This document shows positions 12,759 through 46,378 of a stretch of DNA of 64,000 bases, piece by piece. Both the position numbers and the translations under genes were made by a program. The notes under the pieces are model-generated. The model was given only the letters and a program-made list of their open reading frames with translations. It was not told the DNA's origin and searched no databases. How positions within the stretch are numbered: the first letter of the stretch is position 1; each line of letters begins with the position of its first letter. The stretch comes from Chrysemys picta bellii. Lineage: Eukaryota. Where the stretch lies: positions 8,804,001-8,868,000 of the forward strand of contig NC_088791.1 of assembly GCF_011386835.1 (NCBI RefSeq), in the 5' to 3' direction.

Positions 12759-12962
12759 ACGTTGACTGTTACTTATCTTCTAGGTGTTTGCAAATTGATT
12801 ACTTAATTACTTGCTTCATTATCTTTCCAGGTACTGGAGTTAAGCTGACTGGTCCGTATTTCCCCGGGTTGTCCTTATTTCCCTTTTTATAGGTAGGCAC
12901 TATATTTGCCTTTTTCCAGTCCTCTGGAGTCTCTCCCGTCTTTCATGACTTTTCAAAGATAA

Positions 12963-13110
12963 GGAGTATTTGTGGCACCTTAGAGACTAACAAATTTATT
13001 AGAGCATAATATATAATATATGCTCTAATAAATTTGTTAGTCTCTAAGGTGCCACAAGTACTCCTGTTCTTCTTTTTGCGGATACAGACTAACACGGCTG
13101 CTACTCTGAA
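12963..13110 (+). mobile_element. Mini fold-back Penelope insertion (pLTR 3' end only)
   Basis: 46-bp inverted arms 12963-13008 / 13019-13064 (1 mismatch); AT-only 10-nt loop; TSD ACTTTTCAAAGATAA at 12948-12962 and 13111-13125; 13020-13107 matches 24017-24104 at 87/88 nt. Confidence 0.96.
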
Positions 13111-14224
13111 ACTTTTCAAAGATAATCACTAATGGCTCAGACATCTCCTCAGTCAGTTCCTTGAGTATTCTAGGATGTATTTCATTAGCCAATGGTGTCT
13201 TGAAGACACCTAACTTGTCTCAGTAATTTTTAACTTGTTCTTTCCCTATTTTAGCCTCTAAACTACCTCATTTTCACTGCCATTCACTATGTTAGAAGTC
13301 CAATTGCTACTAACCTTTTTGGTGAAAAACAAACAAAAAAAGTCATTTAGCACTTCTGCCATTTCTACATTTTCTGTTATTGCATTTCCCCCCTCATTGA
13401 GTAACGGACCTACCCTGTCCTTGGTATTCCTCTTGCTTCTAATGTATTTGTAGAATGTTTTCTTGTTACCCATAATGTCTCTAGCTAGTTTAACCTCGTT
13501 TCGTGCCTTGGCCTTTTTATTTTTGTCCCTACATACTTGTGTTATTTGGTTAAATTCATCCTTTGTAATTTGACCTAGTTTCCACTTTTTGTAGGACTCT
13601 TTTTTGAGTTTCAGATCATTGAAGATTTCCTGGGTAAGCCAGGGTGATCTCTTGCCATACTTTCTATCTTTCTTACGCAGTGGGATAGTTTGCTCTTGGG
13701 CCCTTAATAATGTTTCTTTGAAAAACTGCCAACTCTCTTAACTGTTTTTCCCCTTAGACTTGCTTCCCACGGGATCTTACCTACCAACTTTGTGAGTTTG
13801 TTAAAGTCTGCATTCTTGAAATCCATTATCTTTATTGTGCTGTTTTTCTTCCTACCATTCTTTAGAATCATGAACTCTACTATTTCATGATCACTTTCAC
13901 CTAAGCTGCCCTCCACTTTCAAATTCTCAACCAGTTCCTCCCTATTTGTCAAAATCAAACCTAGAACAGCTATCTCCTAGCACCTTCTGAAATACAAAAT
14001 TGTCTCCAATACATTCCTGTTGGATAATGTGTAGCCTGCTGTATTATTTTCCCAACAGCTATCTGGGTAGTTGAAGTCCCTCATCACCACCAAGTCCTGT
14101 GCTTTGGATGATTTTGTTATTAGATATTATTAGAAATAAGATGGACACATTGGTAATCTCTCTGAATCATAAATTCAAATCCAGGTGGGGCTGGAATTGG
14201 CCAAAAGTTATTAGCATGTGACAC

Positions 14225-17875: not shown

Positions 17876-18206
17876 GTATCAGGGGGTAGCTGTGTTAGTC
17901 TGTATCCACAAAAACAACAAGGAGTCCGGTGGCACCTTAAAGATTAACAGATTTATTTGGGCATAAGCTTTCTTCAGATGCATGGAGTGAAAATGACAGA
18001 TACAGGCATAAATATACTGGCATATGAAGAGGAGGGCGTTACCTTACAACTGGAGAACCAGTATTGACAAGGCCAATTTAGTCAGGGTGGACGTGGTCCA
18101 CTCCCAATAATTGATGAGGAGGTGTCAATACCAAGAGAGGGAAAATTGCTTTTGTAGTGAGCCAGCCACTCCCAGTCCCTATTCAAGCCCAAATTAATGG
18201 TGTTAA
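17876..18206 (-). mobile_element. Penelope-like 3' fragment (pLTR plus end of endonuclease)
   Basis: Reverse-complement terminus ...GGATACAGACTAACACAGCTACCCCCTGATAC and GGTGCCACCGGACTCC block, homologous to the other pLTRs here. Confidence 0.88.
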
Positions 18207-18970: not shown

Positions 18971-19219
18971 ATCTAAGGGACTTGCATTCCTAAATCCCTC
19001 TAGGCACTTTCGAAAAATCTTTCCTCTGACTCTAGCTTTCGTTTGTTTGTGATAGTTTAAATATATTCTAAACTTGCTGGAGATACAGCAACTCAAATCC
19101 ATTGTTCTTGGATCAATTGACTGGTTGTATTTGTCTTGAAGTTCATTAGTATGAGCAACAAAACATGAAATACAGACTGCTACAGACTGTTTTCTAAACC
19201 AAAATATAAATTGCAAATA

Positions 19220-19412
19220 CATAGAATCTCAGGGTTGGACGGGACCTCAGAAGATCATCTAGTCCAACACCCTGCTCAAAGCAGGACCAATCCCCAATTA
19301 AATCATCCAACAGATTTTTGCCCCATATCCCTAAATAGTCCCCTCAAGAATTGAACTCACAACCCTGAGTTTAACAGGCCAATGCTCAAACCACTGAGCT
19401 ATCCCTCCCCCC
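19220..19412 (-). mobile_element. Tortoise Pol III/SINE (tRNA-derived head plus CR1-derived tail)
   Basis: Head GGGAGGGATAGCTCAGTGGTTTGAGCATTGGCCTGTTAAACTCAGGGTTGTGAGTTCAATTC has A and B boxes; tail 19220-19300 aligns to the CR1 3' end at 58116-58200. Confidence 0.92.
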
Positions 19413-19419
19413 TCTGACA

Positions 19420-19800
19420 GTGATACATATTATGTAGGCACTTGGACAGCACTTTTGATCTTCATAGAACATTTCAATTGTTAATCAATCCTCAAAATAC
19501 CGCTGTCATGTGCAGGGGTGCTAGAACAATTTGTATAGTGAAGATGCTGAGAGCCATCCAACCAAACTATATACCTTGTATATAATGGAAACCACTTCAA
19601 GCCAGGGAGTGCGGCAGCATCTGCCGCACCCGTAGTTTCAGCACCTATGGTCATGTGGACAGGTAATAATATGTCCATTTTATAGATGGGATAAGTGAGG
19701 CGGAGAGGTTAAATGACTTGAAAAAGGCCATGAGAGGAGTCAATATCAGAGCCAGGGTTAGAACTCAGTTCTGACCTCCCAGTCCTGTGCACTAATCACC
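19420..19800 (-). mobile_element. MIR/CORE-SINE interrupted by a hAT MITE
   Basis: CCATTTTATAGATGGGA.AAGTGAGGCGGAGAGGTTAAATGACTTG CORE segment; both halves flank the MITE at 19513-19649. Confidence 0.75.
19513..19649. mobile_element. hAT MITE
   Basis: Termini CAGGGGTGCTAGAAC...GTTTCAGCACCTATG; exact 8-bp TSD GTCATGTG (19505-19512, 19650-19657). Confidence 0.9.
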
Positions 19801-20689
19801 ACGCCAGACCTCTCAATGGGCCTCCATAGATTTCGTTATCACCCAAGTATGGAGAAGAAATAGGTTTATTACAATCCCTACTAGTCCTCATGAGACTGAT
19901 AAAGAACTGTTACAATGAAGCATGTCCCATTTAAATACTGTAACCTTTAAGCCAAATTTCTTAACAACAACATACTGTTTAGTCAGCTTGAAATGTTCTA
20001 AGATTTGCAAGCATCCCCAGTTTCCAAAGGTCAGACACAAGATAATACTGTATTTAAAAAAACAAAACAAAAAAACCCTTATAGCAAACGTAAGAAAGCT
20101 GGTAACAATACTTCATGATGGATTTACTGTTGTTTATTGGATGATTACATCATCTGGACTCCTTGTGAAAGGGACAGGCTAAGGCCCAGGAAGACGAATA
20201 AGCCCTACCACCAGATTAGTGCACTATAATGGGTGAGATGCAGAGATGCCATTAACGGCAGGGTTGGCGGTGTGATTTACCCTTCTGCACAGGCAAAACA
20301 TAGGTGTAACTTACTGGGTGGGTGTTAGGGACAGTAGGAAAAATGCAAGGGAAGCAACACAGGAATGAAAGCTGGTTTCAGAATGAAGGGGAGGTAAGGA
20401 AGTCATTCAAATCAGATCCAGGTGCGTCAAGTACTAGTCCCTGAGAAAGAGAGAGTTAAGGACGAGGGAGAGATTGTTTCGTGTTTGGCAGCCTCCTCCC
20501 TCGACACACCAATGCAAAAGTTAGGGAGTAAAAACCAGTACATAGGTAAAAGCCACCAAATTAAGGGGACCCATATCGGAACGCATGTAAAACTTCTCTC
20601 TAAAAAAAATTGCACACTGCTTCTGCTGCCAATACAGCCACAGGCATGTGACAACAGAAAAATGCTGGCGAGTCGCTCAGCTTGGGTAC

Positions 20690-20909
20690 CTGCAGAAGAG
20701 GCCGTTGAACTCCTAGCATCTTCATGGTGTCCGCATTGGCCAATATCTTCAGGGGGTCGGATGCCTTGGTGACACCTTCTATCTCTTTGTTGATCTCTGC
20801 TAGGACTTGATTAAGGAAGATGTTCTTGATGTACATGGTGAGGAACTCCCGGAGCGGACATTGTTTGGTTGGGCCAAGGCCCATGGCATGCTCAATCTCC
20901 TGAATAAAT
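20690..20909 (-). CDS. EXOC4: Internal coding exon of exocyst complex component 4 (Sec8); exon 11 by my recollection of the human structure
   Basis: Translates (R)[73 protein letters not shown], nearly identical to vertebrate EXOC4. Acceptor ttttatattttag|A with a candidate branch point CTAAG (A at 20936); donor CAG|GTACCC; 220 bp, phase 2 in, phase 0 out. Confidence 0.97.
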
Positions 20910-21012
20910 CTAAAATATAAAAAGGGAAATCATACTTAGCCACACAATACAATTACCAAAAAAGAAGAACAGGAGGACTTGTGGCACCTTAGAGACTAAC
21001 AAATTTATTAGA

Positions 21013-21052
21013 GCATAAGCTTTCGTGGACTATAGCCCACTTCTTCGGATGC
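21013..21052 (-). ncRNA. Minimal hammerhead motif in the inverted arm (EXOC4 sense strand)
   Basis: Exact reverse complement of 23981-24020. Confidence 0.78.
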
Positions 21053-21247
21053 ATATAGAATGGAACATATATTGAGGAGATATATATACACACATACAGA
21101 GAGCATAAACAGGTGGGAGTTGTCTTACCACCTCTGAGAGGCCAATTAATTAAGAGAAAAAAACTTTTGAAGTGATAATCAAGCTAGCCCAGCACAGACA
21201 GACAGTTAGATAACAAGTGTGAGAATACTTACAAGGGGAGATAGATT

Positions 21248-21940
21248 TCAATGTTTGTAATGGCCCAACCATTCCCAGTCCTTATTTAAACCGGAGTTGA
21301 TTGTGTCTAGTTTGCATATCAATTCTAGCTCAGCAGTTTCTCGTTGGAGTCTGTTTTTGAAGTTTTTCTGTTGTAATATAGCCACCCGCAGGTCTGTCAC
21401 TGAATGACCAGACAGGTTAAAGTGTTCTCCCACTGGTTTTTGAGTATTTTGATTCCTGATGTCAGATTTGTGTCCATTAATTCTTTTGCGTAGAGACTGT
21501 CCGGTTTGGCCAATGTACATGGCAGAGGGGCATTGCTGGCACATGATGGCATATATCACATTGGTAGATGTGCAGGTGAACGAGCCCCTGATGGTATGGC
21601 TGATGTGATTAGGTCCTATGATGATGTCACTGGAATAGATATGTGGACAGAGTTGACATCGGGGTTTGTTACAAGGATAGGTTCCTGGGTTAGTGGTTTT
21701 GTTCAGTGATGTGTGGTTGCTGGTGAGTATTTGCTTTAGGTTGGGGGGTTGTCTGTAAGCGAGGACAGGTCTGTCTCCCAAGATCTGTGAGAGTAAAGGA
21801 TCATCTTTCAGGATAGGTTGTAGATCTCTGATGATGCGCTGGAGAGGTTTTAGTTGGGGGCTGAAGGTGACAGCTAGTGGTGTTCTGTTATTTTCTTTGT
21901 TGGGCCTGTCTCGGGGACATAACCTCATAACCTCAGCCAT
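21248..21940 (-). CDS. Junction-created stand-alone GIY-YIG endonuclease ORF (230 aa from the first ATG); expression unknown
   Basis: ATG at 21940 (MAEVMRLCPR, from antisense RT sequence and the junction) in frame with DRPNK...CNKPRCQLC...VIYAIMC...YIGQTGQ...KH-stop of the inverted arm. The track's 21949 start is GTG. Confidence 0.45.
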   Translation of the reverse strand: MAEVMRLCPRDRPNKENNRTPLAVTFSPQLKPLQRIIRDLQPILKDDPLLSQILGDRPVLAYRQPPNLKQILTSNHTSLNKTTNPGTYPCNKPRCQLCPHIYSSDIIIGPNHISHTIRGSFTCTSTNVIYAIMCQQCPSAMYIGQTGQSLRKRINGHKSDIRNQNTQKPVGEHFNLSGHSVTDLRVAILQQKNFKNRLQRETAELELICKLDTINSGLNKDWEWLGHYKH

Positions 21941-22024
21941 GCAGAACACAACGCCATCTACAGCCTCAGAAACAACCCTGACATCATAATCAAAAAGGCT
22001 GACAAAGGAGGTGCTGTCGTCATC

Positions 22025-23785
22025 ATGAATAAATTGGAATATGACCAGGAGGCTGCTAGACAGCTCTCTAACACCACATTCTACAGGCCATTATCCTCTG
22101 ATCCCACTGAGGATTACCTAAAGAAACTACACCATCTGCTAAAAAAACTCCCTGACAAAGCACAGGAACAAATCTGTACAGACACATGCCTAGAACCCCG
22201 ACCAGGGGTATTCTATTTGCTACCCAAGATCCATAAACCTGGATATCCTGGACGCCCCATCATCTCAGGCATTGGCACCCTAACATCAGGCTTGTCTGGT
22301 TATGTAGACTCTCTCCTCAGACCCTACGCTACCAGCACTCCCAGCTATCTTCGAGACACCACTGACTTCCTGAGGAAACTACAATCCATCGGTGATCTTC
22401 CAGAAAACACCATCCTGGCCACTATGGACGTAGAAGCCCTCTACACCAATATTCCACACAAAGATGGACTACAAGCTATCAGGAACAGTATCCCTGATAA
22501 TATCACAGCTAACCTGGTAGCTGAACTTTGTGATTTTGTCCTCACCCACAACTATTTCACATTTGGGGACAATATATACCTTCAAGTCAGCGGCACTGCT
22601 ATGGGTACCCGCATGGCCCCACAATATGCCAACATTTTTATGGCTGACTTAGAACAACGCTTCCTTAGCTCTCGTCCCCTAACGCCCCTACTCTACTTGC
22701 GCTACATTGATGACATCTTCATCATCTGGACCCATGGAAAAGAAGCCCTTGAGGAATTTCACCATGATTTCAACAATTTCCATCCCACCATCAACCTCAG
22801 CCTAGATCAATCCACACAAGCGGTCCATTTCCTGGACACTACTGTGCTAATAAGCGATGGTCACATAAATACCACCCTATACCGGAAACCTACTGACCGC
22901 TACACTTACCTACATGCCTCCAGCTTCCATCCAGGACACACCACACGATCCATTGTCTACAGCCAAGCTCTAAGATATAACCGCATTTGCTCCAATCCCT
23001 CGGATAGAGACAAGCACCTACAAGATCTCTATCAAGCATTCTTAAAACTACAATACCCACCTGCTGAAGTGAAAAAACAGATTGACAGAGCCAGACGAGT
23101 ACCCAGAAGTCACCTCCTACAAGACAGGCCCAACAAAGAAAATAACAGAACACCACTAGCTGTCACCTTCAGCCCCCAACTAAAACCTCTCCAGCGCATC
23201 ATCAGAGATCTACAACCTATCCTGAAAGATGATCCTTTACTCTCACAGATCTTGGGAGACAGACCTGTCCTCGCTTACAGACAACCCCCCAACCTAAAGC
23301 AAATACTCACCAGCAACCACACATCACTGAACAAAACCACTAACCCAGGAACCTATCCTTGTAACAAACCCCGATGTCAACTCTGTCCACATATCTATTC
23401 CAGTGACATCATCATAGGACCTAATCACATCAGCCATACCATCAGGGGCTCGTTCACCTGCACATCTACCAATGTGATATATGCCATCATGTGCCAGCAA
23501 TGCCCCTCTGCCATGTACATTGGCCAAACCGGACAGTCTCTACGCAAAAGAATTAATGGACACAAATCTGACATCAGGAATCAAAATACTCAAAAACCAG
23601 TGGGAGAACACTTTAACCTGTCTGGTCATTCAGTGACAGACCTGCGGGTGGCTATATTACAACAGAAAAACTTCAAAAACAGACTCCAACGAGAAACTGC
23701 TGAGCTAGAATTGATATGCAAACTAGACACAATCAACTCCGGTTTAAATAAGGACTGGGAATGGTTGGGCCATTACAAACATTGA
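22025..23785 (+). CDS. PLE polyprotein, N-terminally truncated: reverse transcriptase plus Cys-rich linker plus GIY-YIG endonuclease
   Basis: 586 aa with no stops, open upstream to 21926 (HNLSHAEHNAIYSLRNNPDIIIKKADKGGAVVI). Motifs PGRPIISG, DVEALYTNI, GTAMG, RYIDD; linker CNKPRCQLC (a Neptune-type feature); VIY...YIGQT. Confidence 0.96.
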   Translation: MNKLEYDQEAARQLSNTTFYRPLSSDPTEDYLKKLHHLLKKLPDKAQEQICTDTCLEPRPGVFYLLPKIHKPGYPGRPIISGIGTLTSGLSGYVDSLLRPYATSTPSYLRDTTDFLRKLQSIGDLPENTILATMDVEALYTNIPHKDGLQAIRNSIPDNITANLVAELCDFVLTHNYFTFGDNIYLQVSGTAMGTRMAPQYANIFMADLEQRFLSSRPLTPLLYLRYIDDIFIIWTHGKEALEEFHHDFNNFHPTINLSLDQSTQAVHFLDTTVLISDGHINTTLYRKPTDRYTYLHASSFHPGHTTRSIVYSQALRYNRICSNPSDRDKHLQDLYQAFLKLQYPPAEVKKQIDRARRVPRSHLLQDRPNKENNRTPLAVTFSPQLKPLQRIIRDLQPILKDDPLLSQILGDRPVLAYRQPPNLKQILTSNHTSLNKTTNPGTYPCNKPRCQLCPHIYSSDIIIGPNHISHTIRGSFTCTSTNVIYAIMCQQCPSAMYIGQTGQSLRKRINGHKSDIRNQNTQKPVGEHFNLSGHSVTDLRVAILQQKNFKNRLQRETAELELICKLDTINSGLNKDWEWLGHYKH

Positions 23786-23980
23786 AATCTATCTCCCCTT
23801 GTAAGTATTCTCACACTTGTTATCTAACTGTCTGTCTGTGCTGGGCTAGCTTGATTATCACTTCAAAAGTTTTTTTCTCTTAATTAATTGGCCTCTCAGA
23901 GGTGGTAAGACAACTCCCACCTGTTTATGCTCTCTGTATGTGTGTATATATATCTCCTCAATATATGTTCCATTCTATAT

Positions 23981-24020
23981 GCATCCGAAGAAGTGGGCTA
24001 TAGTCCACGAAAGCTTATGC
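23981..24020 (+). ncRNA. Minimal type I hammerhead motif in pLTR
   Basis: GCAT-CCGAAGA-A-GTGGGC(TATA)GTCCAC-GAAA-GC-TT^ATGC: stem I GCAT/ATGC, palindromic AAGCTT stem III, predicted cut between 24016 and 24017; U4 replaced by C. Confidence 0.8.
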
Positions 24021-24514
24021 TCTAATAAATTTGTTAGTCTCTAAGGTGCCACAAGTCCTCCTGTTCTTCTTTTTGCGGATACAGACTAACACGGCTGCTA
24101 CTCTAATACAATTACCATGACCTACACATTGTAATGTCCCATACATACAGCTAGTGTGAGAACACAGGGTCAATCATGGGAGCTGGCGGGAAAGAGTTGT
24201 AAGATTCAGAGGCAATGGAGTTCTAACAGAGTGCACTGGACACAGGCAGGACTCCTGAGTTTATCACCAGCTATGCCCTTGACTGTACCCAATTTGAGAT
24301 TTCTTAAAGGCTCCTGATCTTCAGAAAGGGCTGAGAATCTACTTAAAATGGAGGCACCCAAAATCATTAGTCACTTTTGAAAATTCTGACCTGCATGTGA
24401 ACTTGGGCAAATCATTTTAACTACCCATGACTCAGTTTCCCTTTCTGTAAAATTATGTTCCACTTTATTTCGAACAATAACAGCCCCTCACTCTTAAATG
24501 GCTCTTTTCATCAG

Positions 24515-24685
24515 CAGATCTCAAAGCATTTTACAAAGGAGTTTTGTATCATTATCCCCATTTTTACAAACAGGGTAAGCGAGACACGGACAGGTGACAT
24601 GACATGCCCAAAGTCACCCAGCCAGGCTGAAAACCAGGTATAAAACCCAGATCTCCTGCGTTCCAGTCCAGTGCTCTATCCACTT
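24515..24685 (-). mobile_element. MIR/CORE-SINE
   Basis: ATTATCCCCATTTTTACAAACAGGG.AAGCGAGACAC...GACATGCCCAAAGTCACCCAGC. Confidence 0.8.
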
Positions 24686-25119
24686 GGCCACAGTGCTCCT
24701 ACTCATGCACTCACTGATCCCTGGAAGAAAAATGCTTTATATGTGCTATGTATTATTATTTTATTCCAGGAGAAGTGATTGGATCACATTCACTTATATG
24801 CATGCAGAAGGCATGCTGCCTTTTTCCGAATATCGCCCCCCACTTAATGTCCCACCCTCCTCAAAAATTTTAGCATCTTCTCCATCAACACATCTTTATT
24901 TCACTGACATAATTTGCTTGGCCAAGACAGCTGCTTTTTCCAGGAACCACCTCCTCTCACATCAATAAAGTGACACCCTCAAGGCAAAGATGGTTTCTTT
25001 GATCTACATCCAAAATGACCGAAGTGAGTCATTTTTTTTTCTTTATTTCTTGAAGTGTTGAGGACGATAACAAGAGAAATCACAATTAATTGATTTATCA
25101 ATCTACAGTACTTGTATGG

Positions 25120-25350
25120 CTCCCATTATGGCAGTATTTGAGCACCTTGCAGACTTTAATGTATTTACGCTCACCACACCCTGGTGATGCAGGGCAGTGC
25201 TACTAACCCTGTTTTGCGGGGGGGGGGGGGGGGGGGAGGAATTGAGGCACGGAGAGACTAAATGACAGGCCAAAGATCACACAGGAAGCCGGTAGTGAAG
25301 CCGGGATTTGAACCTAAGTCTCCCAAGTCAGTCCCTTAACCACTTGGCCA
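25120..25350 (-). mobile_element. MIR/CORE-SINE containing a G19 run
   Basis: AATTGAGGCACGGAGAGACTAAATGAC...CCAAAGATCACACAGGAAG...GGGATTTGAACCTAAGTCTCC; poly-G at 25218-25236. Confidence 0.78.
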
Positions 25351-26654
25351 CCCCTCCTCTCCATGGGAAGGATTTTTTGAACACAGGCATTTCTGACATT
25401 TCCAGCATTTATCAGCGATGTCTTAGCAGTCACTATGCCCCCTGAACAGATCAATATGATTTTCTTAATTGTCGATATTTTCTACTTCCACACGTAGTTC
25501 TCTAGATGAGGTAACTTCTCTTAGCAGAATTGATAGCGTGTCCCCTGTCAATTTCAGCAGCATGATTTCTTTCAGATATAAACCATTTGTTCCCCAATGC
25601 TTACACTCCGCTGACTTCATCAGTCTAAAATGACACATATGGGGTGAGGCAGCATCTGCATGGGGACCCATTCAGTCCAATAACTTTGAAAATTCACTCA
25701 ACTGTCAGAGCTGCAGTGGGACTTCCCCCAGCAAAACGCACACGGAAAGAAACACAAAGGAAGGCAGTTTATTCCCTTATTTGCACAGATCGATAAAGCG
25801 AATAAAGTTATCCACCAGGGAAACTGCAGAGTCATGAAGCAAGAGAAAGGCAGAAGAGGCCTATCTCTGAAATAACACACCCAATGTCACCAACTTCTGT
25901 GGACTGACATTTCCTGATGTCTTCAAGGGGATGCTTGTCATGATTAAGCTGTGACCCACTGTGCTTTTATATTTGTTCCCATATCTGTTTGCAATGTTCA
26001 TATCACTCTTTATATGGATACCCTTCTTTATACAGGGCTTCTTACAGAGCTTTTCTGATCTGGAAAGTAATTTTAGAAATAAGAATTAACCTTCCCAGTG
26101 CCCCTGGTAGTATCCTTGTTCTACAGGTAAGGAAAGCAAGGCAGAGCACTCAGTTTCACAAATGCATATGCACATGCTAAGCTTTAAGCCGATGAATACT
26201 GCCATTGAGGTCAAAGGGACTACTCACATGTTCACAGTTTGAGCATTTGCATAACTGTCCGTAGGAATGGGGTGTAAACGACTTGCCAAAGGCCACAGGA
26301 AGAGTTGGTATCAGACCCAGGATTAGATACAGAATTCTTAGTTCCCAGCCTCGTGCATTAATTTCTAACCCAAAACTCTGCTAAGGCTCCCACTTCAATC
26401 ACCATAGACCTTGTCTACATCAGGAAACTACACCAGGTTAGGTAACCATGTGTTCTAATATTATGTAATTTCTTGGCACAGACAGGGCGACAGTGGCTCA
26501 TTATCACTCAGTAAGGGCCAGAAGCGTGTCCGCGGTGCTTTAAGGGATTTGTATTTTATTTGACGCGAACCATAAAGTAATCACAGTGCATGTGAATGCT
26601 GATAGGCAGAGATGATTTAGGGAGTGTGAAACTTAAGACTGCTCAGCAAAGCTT

Positions 26655-34274: not shown

Positions 34275-34427
34275 GTCTGGAAATCTGTATTTTCCACTGC
34301 ATGCATCCGATGAAGTGGGTTTTAGCCCACGAAAGCTTATGCTCAAAAAAATTTGTTAGTCTCTAAGGTGCCACAAGTACTCCTGTTCTTTTTGCGGATA
34401 CAGACTAACACGGCTGCTACTCTGAAA
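34275..34427 (+). mobile_element. Penelope pLTR 3' fragment without inversion
   Basis: Ends GCGGATACAGACTAACACGGCTGCTACTCTGAAA like the 24-kb element; no TSD found. Confidence 0.92.
34303..34342 (+). ncRNA. Minimal hammerhead motif
   Basis: GCAT-CCGATGA-A-GTGGGT(TTTA)GCCCAC-GAAA-GC-TT^ATGC. Confidence 0.78.
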
Positions 34428-39313: not shown

Positions 39314-39453
39314 NNNNNNNNNNNNNNNNNNNNNNNNNNNNNNNNNNNNNNNNNNNNNNNNNNNNNNNNNNNNNNNNNNNNNNNNNNNNNNNNNNNNNNN
39401 NNNNNNNNNNNNNNNNNNNNNNNNNNNNNNNNNNNNNNNNNNNNNNNNNNNNN
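39314..39453. other. Assembly gap (140 N)
   Basis: Run of N bases. Confidence 1.
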
Positions 39454-46181: not shown

Positions 46182-46378
46182 CAAAGAGTCCGGTGGCACC
46201 TTAGAGACTAACAGATGTACTGGAGCATAAACTTTCGTGGGTGAATACACGCATGCGTCTGACGAAGTGGGTATTCACCCACAAAAGCTTATGCTCCAAT
46301 ACGTCTGTTAGTCTATAAGGTGCCACAGGACTCTTTGTTGCTTTTTACAGATCCAGACTAACACGGCTACCCCTCTGA
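46182..46378 (+). mobile_element. Fold-back Penelope mini-insertion (different subfamily)
   Basis: 67-bp imperfect arms 46182-46248 / 46271-46337; 41-nt unpaired 3' tail; exact 12-bp TSD TATGGAAAGCTT (46170-46181, 46379-46390). Confidence 0.95.
46255..46294 (+). ncRNA. Minimal hammerhead motif with G12A change
   Basis: GCGT-CTGACGA-A-GTGGGT(ATTC)ACCCAC-AAAA-GC-TT^ATGC; the inverted arm still reads CACGAAA. Confidence 0.7.

Follow-up and report, generated by a model that had tools for sequence, protein, structure and literature searches.

A probable single recent insertion of a fold-back Penelope-like element beside a 3' splice site of EXOC4 in Chrysemys picta bellii

The stretch of Chrysemys picta bellii DNA analysed here (the window, 64,000 nt, with positions numbered from its first letter) contains a coding exon of EXOC4 and, in the adjoining intron, a Penelope-like element (PLE) in fold-back form (Table 1). 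Over the last 26 codons of the exon, 25 residues agree with the start of PDB entry 8ay2 ('Exocyst complex component 4'), and a GT donor directly follows at 20689-20688. A Pfam search of the exon alone gave no match, and the identity was obtained by the PDB sequence search. The start of the exon was placed from the AG, the pyrimidine tract and the continuity of the frame. Intron sequence of 49 nt (20910-20958) separates the exon from the element, and the A of the candidate branch point (20936) is 23 nt away from it. Both distances had been given in an earlier note, made from the letters of this DNA, and are correct. The open reading frame (ORF) of the PLE is antisense to EXOC4, whereas the left arm of the fold-back reads as PLE sense along the EXOC4 sense strand.

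A repeat finder applied to 20000-25500 returned a single inverted pair, with arms of 953 nt that are 1210 nt apart and 100% complementary; their exact reverse-complement identity was rechecked by script. In the same interval, no direct upstream repeat (direct pseudo-long terminal repeat, pseudo-LTR) was found at the element. The element spans 3146 bp (20959-24104) and is enclosed by a perfect 13-bp target-site duplication (TSD), which extends no further on either side, contains ATT and would match by chance at fixed positions with a probability of ~1.5e-8. The final 30 nt lie outside the inverted repeat: the sense copy comprises 2179 nt and ends with this tail, and the inverted copy begins 30 nt before the 3' end of the element. 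The same tail also terminates two further copies in the window (13078-13107 and 34394-34423). Where the two copies meet there is a 14-nt scar, made up of 6 nt of filler and 8 nt that duplicate 21926-21933. The fold-back with identical arms, the perfect TSD, the reverse transcriptase (RT)-endonuclease coding and the position beside EXOC4, all put forward in the earlier note, were confirmed. It is highly probable that they record a single recent insertion of an endonuclease-bearing PLE in the EXOC4 intron, 5'-truncated, non-autonomous and folded back within one TSD.

Table 1. Features of the EXOC4 intron insertion and fold-back copies of the same family. Positions refer to the window unless one of the other sampled loci (L001, L003) is named.
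Feature	Position	Strand	Evidence or remarks
EXOC4 coding exon, 220 nt, immediately downstream of the insertion in transcript direction	20690..20909	-	PDB 8ay2 match; GT donor, AG acceptor
3' splice-site region: AG 20911-20910, pyrimidine tract, candidate branch CTAAG with A at 20936	20910..20945	-	read from sequence
TSD, left copy, AATACAATTACCA	20946..20958	.	23% GC; single copy in empty-site contigs
Inverted arm, antisense copy of the element 3' part (C-terminal 233 codons, 3' untranslated region), tail-less	20959..21911	-	100% reverse complement of 23122-24074
Hammerhead-like motif, inverted arm, core CCGAAGA ... GAAA; AATAAA 21009-21004 on the same strand (EXOC4 sense)	21017..21048	-	motif inspection; Rfam negative
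Inner junction scar, filler CGGGGA + CATAACCT	21912..21925	.	other copies diverge upstream of 21926
Open frame, 620 codons, stop 23783-23785	21923..23785	+	DKG 21998-22012; YIDD 22703-22714; GIY-YIG motifs 23474-23614
Sense PLE copy, 5'-truncated, tail-terminated	21926..24104	+	98.8% identity to L001 5899-8045; BLAST map
Right arm, portion of the sense copy repeated in inverted form	23122..24074	+	inverted-repeat identity
Hammerhead-like motif, sense copy; AATAAA 24024-24029	23985..24016	+	motif inspection; Rfam negative
AC-rich tail, 30 nt, GCGGATACAGACTAACACGGCTGCTACTCT	24075..24104	+	right end only
TSD, right copy	24105..24117	.	matches left copy; empty-site contigs
Fold-back	12956-13107		tail on sense arm
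Fold-back	20959-24104		tail on sense arm
Fold-back	46193-46376		tail on sense arm
Fold-back	L001 4825-8045		tail on inverted arm; arms 846 nt, 99.8% identity
Fold-back	L003 6533-6723		tail on inverted arm
Fold-back	L003 9627-11489		tail on inverted arm

The identity of the element was established from its plus-strand ORF, whose first ATG lies at 22025. Pfam detected RVT_1 (E 2.7e-11) and, C-terminally in the same ORF, GIY-YIG (residues 518-567; 25.7 bits against a cutoff of 22.6), with the endonuclease motifs arranged as VIY...YIGQTG...R..H...E. In an alignment with PLE proteins, ADKGG (residues 26-30) and YIDD (residues 261-264) were invariant. The last 233 aa recur in the minus-strand ORF of the left arm (21248-21949), in agreement with the earlier note. 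At E <= 1e-20, 2784 protein relatives were retrieved, the nearest of them in turtles, and the relatives carry RVT_1, DUF8422 and HTH_animal. From its domain composition, the element can be classed as an endonuclease-positive PLE (RT with a C-terminal GIY-YIG), the assignment that had been made before. Its terminal repeat is of the pseudo-LTR type, formed by the inverted, 5'-truncated copy at the 5' end; the tail is one-sided, being missing from the inverted arm; and the TSD is of the AT-rich, variable kind. A LINE-1-type twin-priming inversion was ruled out, because the inverted arm duplicates all of 23122-24074 and is not a separate part of the RNA, as was a DNA transposon of the Foldback or miniature inverted-repeat transposable element type, since the repeat ends 30 nt short of the right end and an RT is encoded. 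The best relative (P0001), a 586-aa 'uncharacterized protein' of Chrysemys picta bellii with 584/586 identical residues, was considered as a product of the same locus and rejected; it is the product of another copy (L001), encoded in a different, myosin-IX-like gene. For the 586-aa ORF of the EXOC4 insertion itself, an exact-sequence look-up returned no record.

The earlier note had called the RT-endonuclease frame intact and the family probably still active. The frame is open and its RT and endonuclease motifs are intact, but it is cut at its 5' end by the inversion junction (21912-21925), is not a full-length frame and does not support an active copy. Aligned with relatives of 714-832 aa, it starts just before the conserved HNLS...ADKGG block; at least 95 N-terminal residues are missing in comparison with two turtle models, and ~210-250 in comparison with two longer PLE ORFs. 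The sense copy at L001 runs 197 nt further in the 5' direction with matching coding sequence, and contigs of other copies part from the window sequence just upstream of 21926, where they leave loose ends. The copy in the EXOC4 intron is thus non-autonomous, though its RT and endonuclease motifs are preserved: it has no N-terminal domain, no start codon upstream of 22025 and no promoter-bearing repeat ahead of the frame.

Logan short-read contigs from four differently labelled organisms (A to D) were mapped to 20400-24600. In organisms C (record 24, 1627 nt) and D (record 10, 561 nt), 20945 is joined directly to 24105 with one copy of the TSD, which is a precise empty site in which the splice-site region continues into the sequence from 24105 onward. 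The flanks of these two organisms diverge from the window by ~1.1-1.2%. In organism A (records 1 and 7), a contig of 1395 nt leads from the left flank into the inverted arm, of which it covers 28 nt, and another of 293 nt contains the final 23 nt of the tail followed by the right flank; neither shows any difference. The contigs of organism B, likewise with 0 differences, stop exactly at 20958 and start exactly at 24105. Because the assembly graph breaks at both boundaries when filled and empty alleles coexist, this organism is apparently heterozygous. The insertion thus appears to segregate, being filled in A, apparently heterozygous in B and empty in C and D.

The identity of the arms (0/953 differences) is best understood if both were copied in one recent event. 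It sets a 95% upper bound of 0.31% on arm divergence, compared with the 1.1-1.2% flank divergence to C and D, and, if rates between 2.5e-10 and 2e-9 per site per year are assumed, an upper bound on age of 6.3 to 0.8 million years. The view of the earlier note that this is a genuine and very recent insertion is borne out by the empty sites, the identical arms and the apparent heterozygote. Within the element, the summed contig depth reached 1e5-2e6, as against ~24-60 in the flanks, and ~40% of the mapped contigs were at least 99% alike; this abundance and likeness fit continued activity of the family, short of proof. Variant letters within the element in these contigs were considered as traces of RNA editing, an explanation that was rejected, since they stem from thousands of paralogous copies.

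The form of the insertion was compared with that of its relatives by placing the sense unit with BLAST in 235 kb of DNA, made up of the window and five loci taken from two emydid assemblies. In this sample, 11 family insertions were counted, one orthologous pair being taken once. Six of the 11 are fold-backs, and a full tail was present on exactly one end in 6/6 of these. If tails were assigned independently, such a pattern would have a probability of at most ~0.016 in this small sample. The TSDs of the six fold-backs are 11-15 bp long and low in GC; those of the sister copies measure 10-15 bp with 17-42% GC. An inverted, 5'-truncated copy at the 5' end is a described architecture of PLE insertions, and a tail of 30-40 bp is often found at one end only (Craig et al. 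2021, PMC8557442). Since the fold-back is the standard published shape of PLEs and the majority form in this turtle family, it is not remarkable in itself.

The other copies differ in detail. The small fold-back at 12956-13107 consists of an inverted piece of ~47 nt, a short AT loop and a direct, tail-bearing 3' end of 89 nt; it has a 15-bp TSD (ACTTTTCAAAGATAA), and both of its arms stop at the predicted hammerhead cleavage point. The fold-back at 46193-46376 is older and more diverged (76-90% identity, 11-bp TSD). Two further copies in the window, at 34288-34423 and 17888-17972, are simple 5'-truncated insertions with tails and not fold-backs, and the former starts just upstream of the hammerhead-like motif. 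At L001 4815-4856 and window 13098-13125, the same 11 nt (GAAACTTTTCA) follow the usual tail end (…CTACTCT), which may reflect a chance match with the TSD of the window copy or a longer 3' RNA template priming by microhomology. A tail-less 5'-truncated copy that is ~96% identical to the PLE in the EXOC4 intron was found with the same truncation point at L002 41284-42380 and L004 56811-57909, in assemblies of Chrysemys picta bellii and Malaclemys terrapin. This is apparently an older insertion shared by orthology, and the family would therefore have been active over a long period. The window also contains a run of 140 N at 39314-39453 (assembly gap or masked).

Both arms of the EXOC4 insertion carry a hammerhead-like motif. 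Rfam returned no hammerhead or other credible family in 19000-26000 (E <= 1) or 23880-24110 (E <= 10), and the search yielded only a chance match to a long non-coding RNA (E 6.9). Minimal hammerhead ribozymes (Min-HHRs) have been reported in turtle (PMC4209133). The hammerhead-like cores of the young subfamily read CCGAAGA or CCGATGA, and the older copy at 46193-46376 has CTGACGA, with the canonical U4, and AAAA in place of GAAA.

The arrangement of the arms could be explained by priming on both target strands. The PLE ribonucleoprotein would cut both strands of the target DNA, and both 3' ends would prime reverse transcription of the element RNA, giving one complementary DNA (cDNA) from a distal start site (24104, tail kept) and another from a proximal site 30 nt upstream (the equivalent of 24074, tail-less). 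The 3' ends of the two cDNAs would then be joined via filler and microhomology, as the junction scar suggests, and each would be completed on the other. The PLE protein of the green anole has been purified and cleaves and extends both strands in vitro; within an AC-rich internal region it has two neighbouring start sites for reverse transcription, and the stretch between them corresponds to the genomic tail (Frangieh et al. 2024, PMC11167929). Three sister fold-backs (L001, L003 6533-6723 and L003 9627-11489) have the tail on the shorter arm and private upstream sequence on the longer one. Because each of their arms holds sequence missing from the other, the two must have been copied separately from RNA, which argues against snap-back of one cDNA as the general route. 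With some reserve, dual-strand priming from two adjacent RT start sites is favoured as the origin of the fold-back. The small family sample, with one tail in 6/6 fold-backs and private sequence in each arm in three, lends in vivo support to the dual-strand, two-start-site model that emerged from the in vitro work on the lizard PLE.

Several points weigh against this account and against the insertion as described above. The inverted arm in the EXOC4 intron is a pure subset of the sense copy and is compatible with snap-back at this locus, so that the argument for dual priming derives from the sister copies and from the lizard protein in vitro. The inner junction (21911/21912) is unspanned by any listed contig, and the length and interior of the arms are those given by the assembly. 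For organism A, the overlaps between flank and element (28 and 23 nt) fall under the 31-letter bridging rule of the tool, and the sample may be the assembly's own source. The heterozygosity of organism B is deduced solely from the break points of contigs. As for the hammerhead-like motif, its core (CCGAAGA) has C instead of the U4 of the ribozyme core, and it fits no Rfam model.

Snap-back of a single target-primed cDNA, whose 3' end would switch onto the nascent cDNA, copy 953 nt back and stop 30 nt short, is the strongest alternative. It would accommodate the containment of the inverted arm in the sense copy, the filler and the 8-nt duplication at the junction, which are typical of template jumps, and the fact that both arms of the copy at 12956-13107 stop at the same internal point. 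However, it offers no reason for a stop exactly at the second RT start site, a tail confined to the shorter arm, as in the three sister fold-backs, is impossible by arm-from-arm copying, and a related PLE protein extends both strands in vitro. Snap-back is considered unlikely on balance, and dual-strand priming remains the preferred mechanism.

Whatever its origin, the fold-back could affect its host gene. In the pre-mRNA, the arms can plausibly pair into a perfect 953-bp duplex, which is predicted to have a free energy of -1907 kcal/mol on EXOC4-sense RNA and might act as a substrate for ADAR or for the production of small RNAs. The latter idea has a precedent, because in Penelope-transformed D. 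melanogaster, the inverted regions of rearranged copies are precisely where small interfering RNAs (siRNAs) map (Evgen'ev 2013, PMC3681739). The proximal arm moreover places a hammerhead-like motif (21048-21017) and an AATAAA (21009-21004) ~100-140 nt from the acceptor on the EXOC4 sense strand. It could thus be argued that the insertion is functionally consequential, either through editing or dicing of the duplex or through a lowering of the amount of correct EXOC4 mRNA by the hammerhead-like motif or the AATAAA. Against this, the insertion leaves the splice signals (AG, pyrimidine tract and candidate branch point) untouched, at least one animal carries the filled allele, apparently in the homozygous state, and very many copies of the family are scattered through turtle genomes, 10 of the 11 sampled ones lying within gene spans or gene models. 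A functional consequence is rated as rather improbable. A strong EXOC4 defect is unlikely because the splice signals are intact and one animal apparently has only the filled allele; the effect on EXOC4 is most likely none or mild.

The assembly itself was also considered as the source of the structure. A chimeric long read or the assembler could have produced an inverted duplication, the true locus being a simple 5'-truncated PLE or another arrangement, and tandem and inverted PLE structures are known to trouble assemblies (PMC8557442); the inner junction, as stated, is without an independent contig among those listed. Yet the contigs of organism A join the left flank to PLE sequence in inverted orientation and the tail to the right flank, a perfect TSD surrounds the composite, the empty sites agree with it exactly, and the same architecture recurs at five further loci in two assemblies, so that an artefact is very improbable. 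Two independent head-to-head insertions, conceivable in an extremely abundant family with nested and adjacent insertions, or an old insertion with arms homogenised by gene conversion can be dismissed as more improbable still, given one TSD around the whole unit and none at the inner junction, arms that are 100% identical where independent copies differ by at least 1-2%, and the absence of the insertion from two related organisms, which shows that it is not old.

As a kind of object, the insertion is nothing new: PLEs, inverted 5' copies, one-sided tails and the presence of PLEs in turtles have all been published. A literature search for turtle-specific work on PLE activity returned nothing specific. 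Turtle genome annotations list truncated PLE ORFs under names of the form 'uncharacterized protein LOC...' (P0001, P0011, P0012, P0025, P0026, P0089 and others). PLE-derived segments were also seen in models named for host genes (TANGO2, a zinc-finger protein, MVB12B, DNAJB13 and endothelin-3), where they represent either annotation contamination or exonisation. Annotators should be aware that truncated PLE ORFs are named as host proteins and that some of them lie inside host gene models.

The apparently polymorphic EXOC4 insertion could serve as a population marker. It may also show, as a natural experiment, whether editing, dicing or harm results from a long, perfect hairpin in an intron near a splice site. 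A speculative proposition, and quite an improbable one, is that the carriers of a segregating allele in which a perfect 953-bp duplex and the branch point of a constitutive exon are 23 nt apart show measurable consequences. If it held, hyper-editing or small RNAs, altered or reduced splicing of EXOC4, or premature cleavage at the hammerhead-like motif or the AATAAA would be expected, and the allele would allow the tolerance to long intronic double-stranded RNA (dsRNA) beside a 3' splice site of an essential exocyst gene to be tested in vivo in a reptile, which is rarely possible.

Known systems resemble the insertion in different respects. In LINE-1 twin priming, reportedly described by Ostertag and Kazazian in 2001, reverse transcription is primed from both strands of the target, and the cDNAs meet at an inner junction with microhomology, which leaves an inverted 5' part inside a single TSD. 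The joining by filler and microhomology at the junction of the EXOC4-intron PLE resembles this process. LINE-1 twin priming is, however, said to combine two essentially non-overlapping parts of the RNA without a long inverted repeat, whereas the PLE contains the same 953 nt twice. The intronic inverted Alu pairs of primates, which are ADAR substrates, likewise form an intramolecular duplex in intronic pre-mRNA from inverted retroelement copies; they are ~300 bp long, imperfect and derived from two insertions, whereas the EXOC4-intron duplex would be 953 bp long, perfect and the product of one event. Somatic cells of vertebrates more often edit (ADAR) or sense long dsRNA than dice it.

In transformed Drosophila melanogaster (PMC3681739), newly transposed, rearranged Penelope copies likewise contain long inverted repeats from which dsRNA can form; siRNAs were observed in the fly, whereas the turtle insertion is known here from DNA. 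Another system for comparison is PAc, the Poseidon PLE of Anolis carolinensis (PMC11167929), a reptile PLE whose protein cleaves both strands of AT-rich DNA and extends each of them. In a similar manner, the starts of the two turtle arms differ by 30 nt within an AC-rich tail, and the TSD is AT-rich and contains ATT. The start sites of PAc lie inside the ORF beginning of a tandem unit, whereas those of the turtle family, which are deduced from genomic sequence, come after the 3' untranslated region. Set against the general PLE architecture (PMC8557442), the EXOC4-intron copy, with its inverted partner only, without a direct pseudo-LTR and without a full-length ORF, differs in nothing essential.

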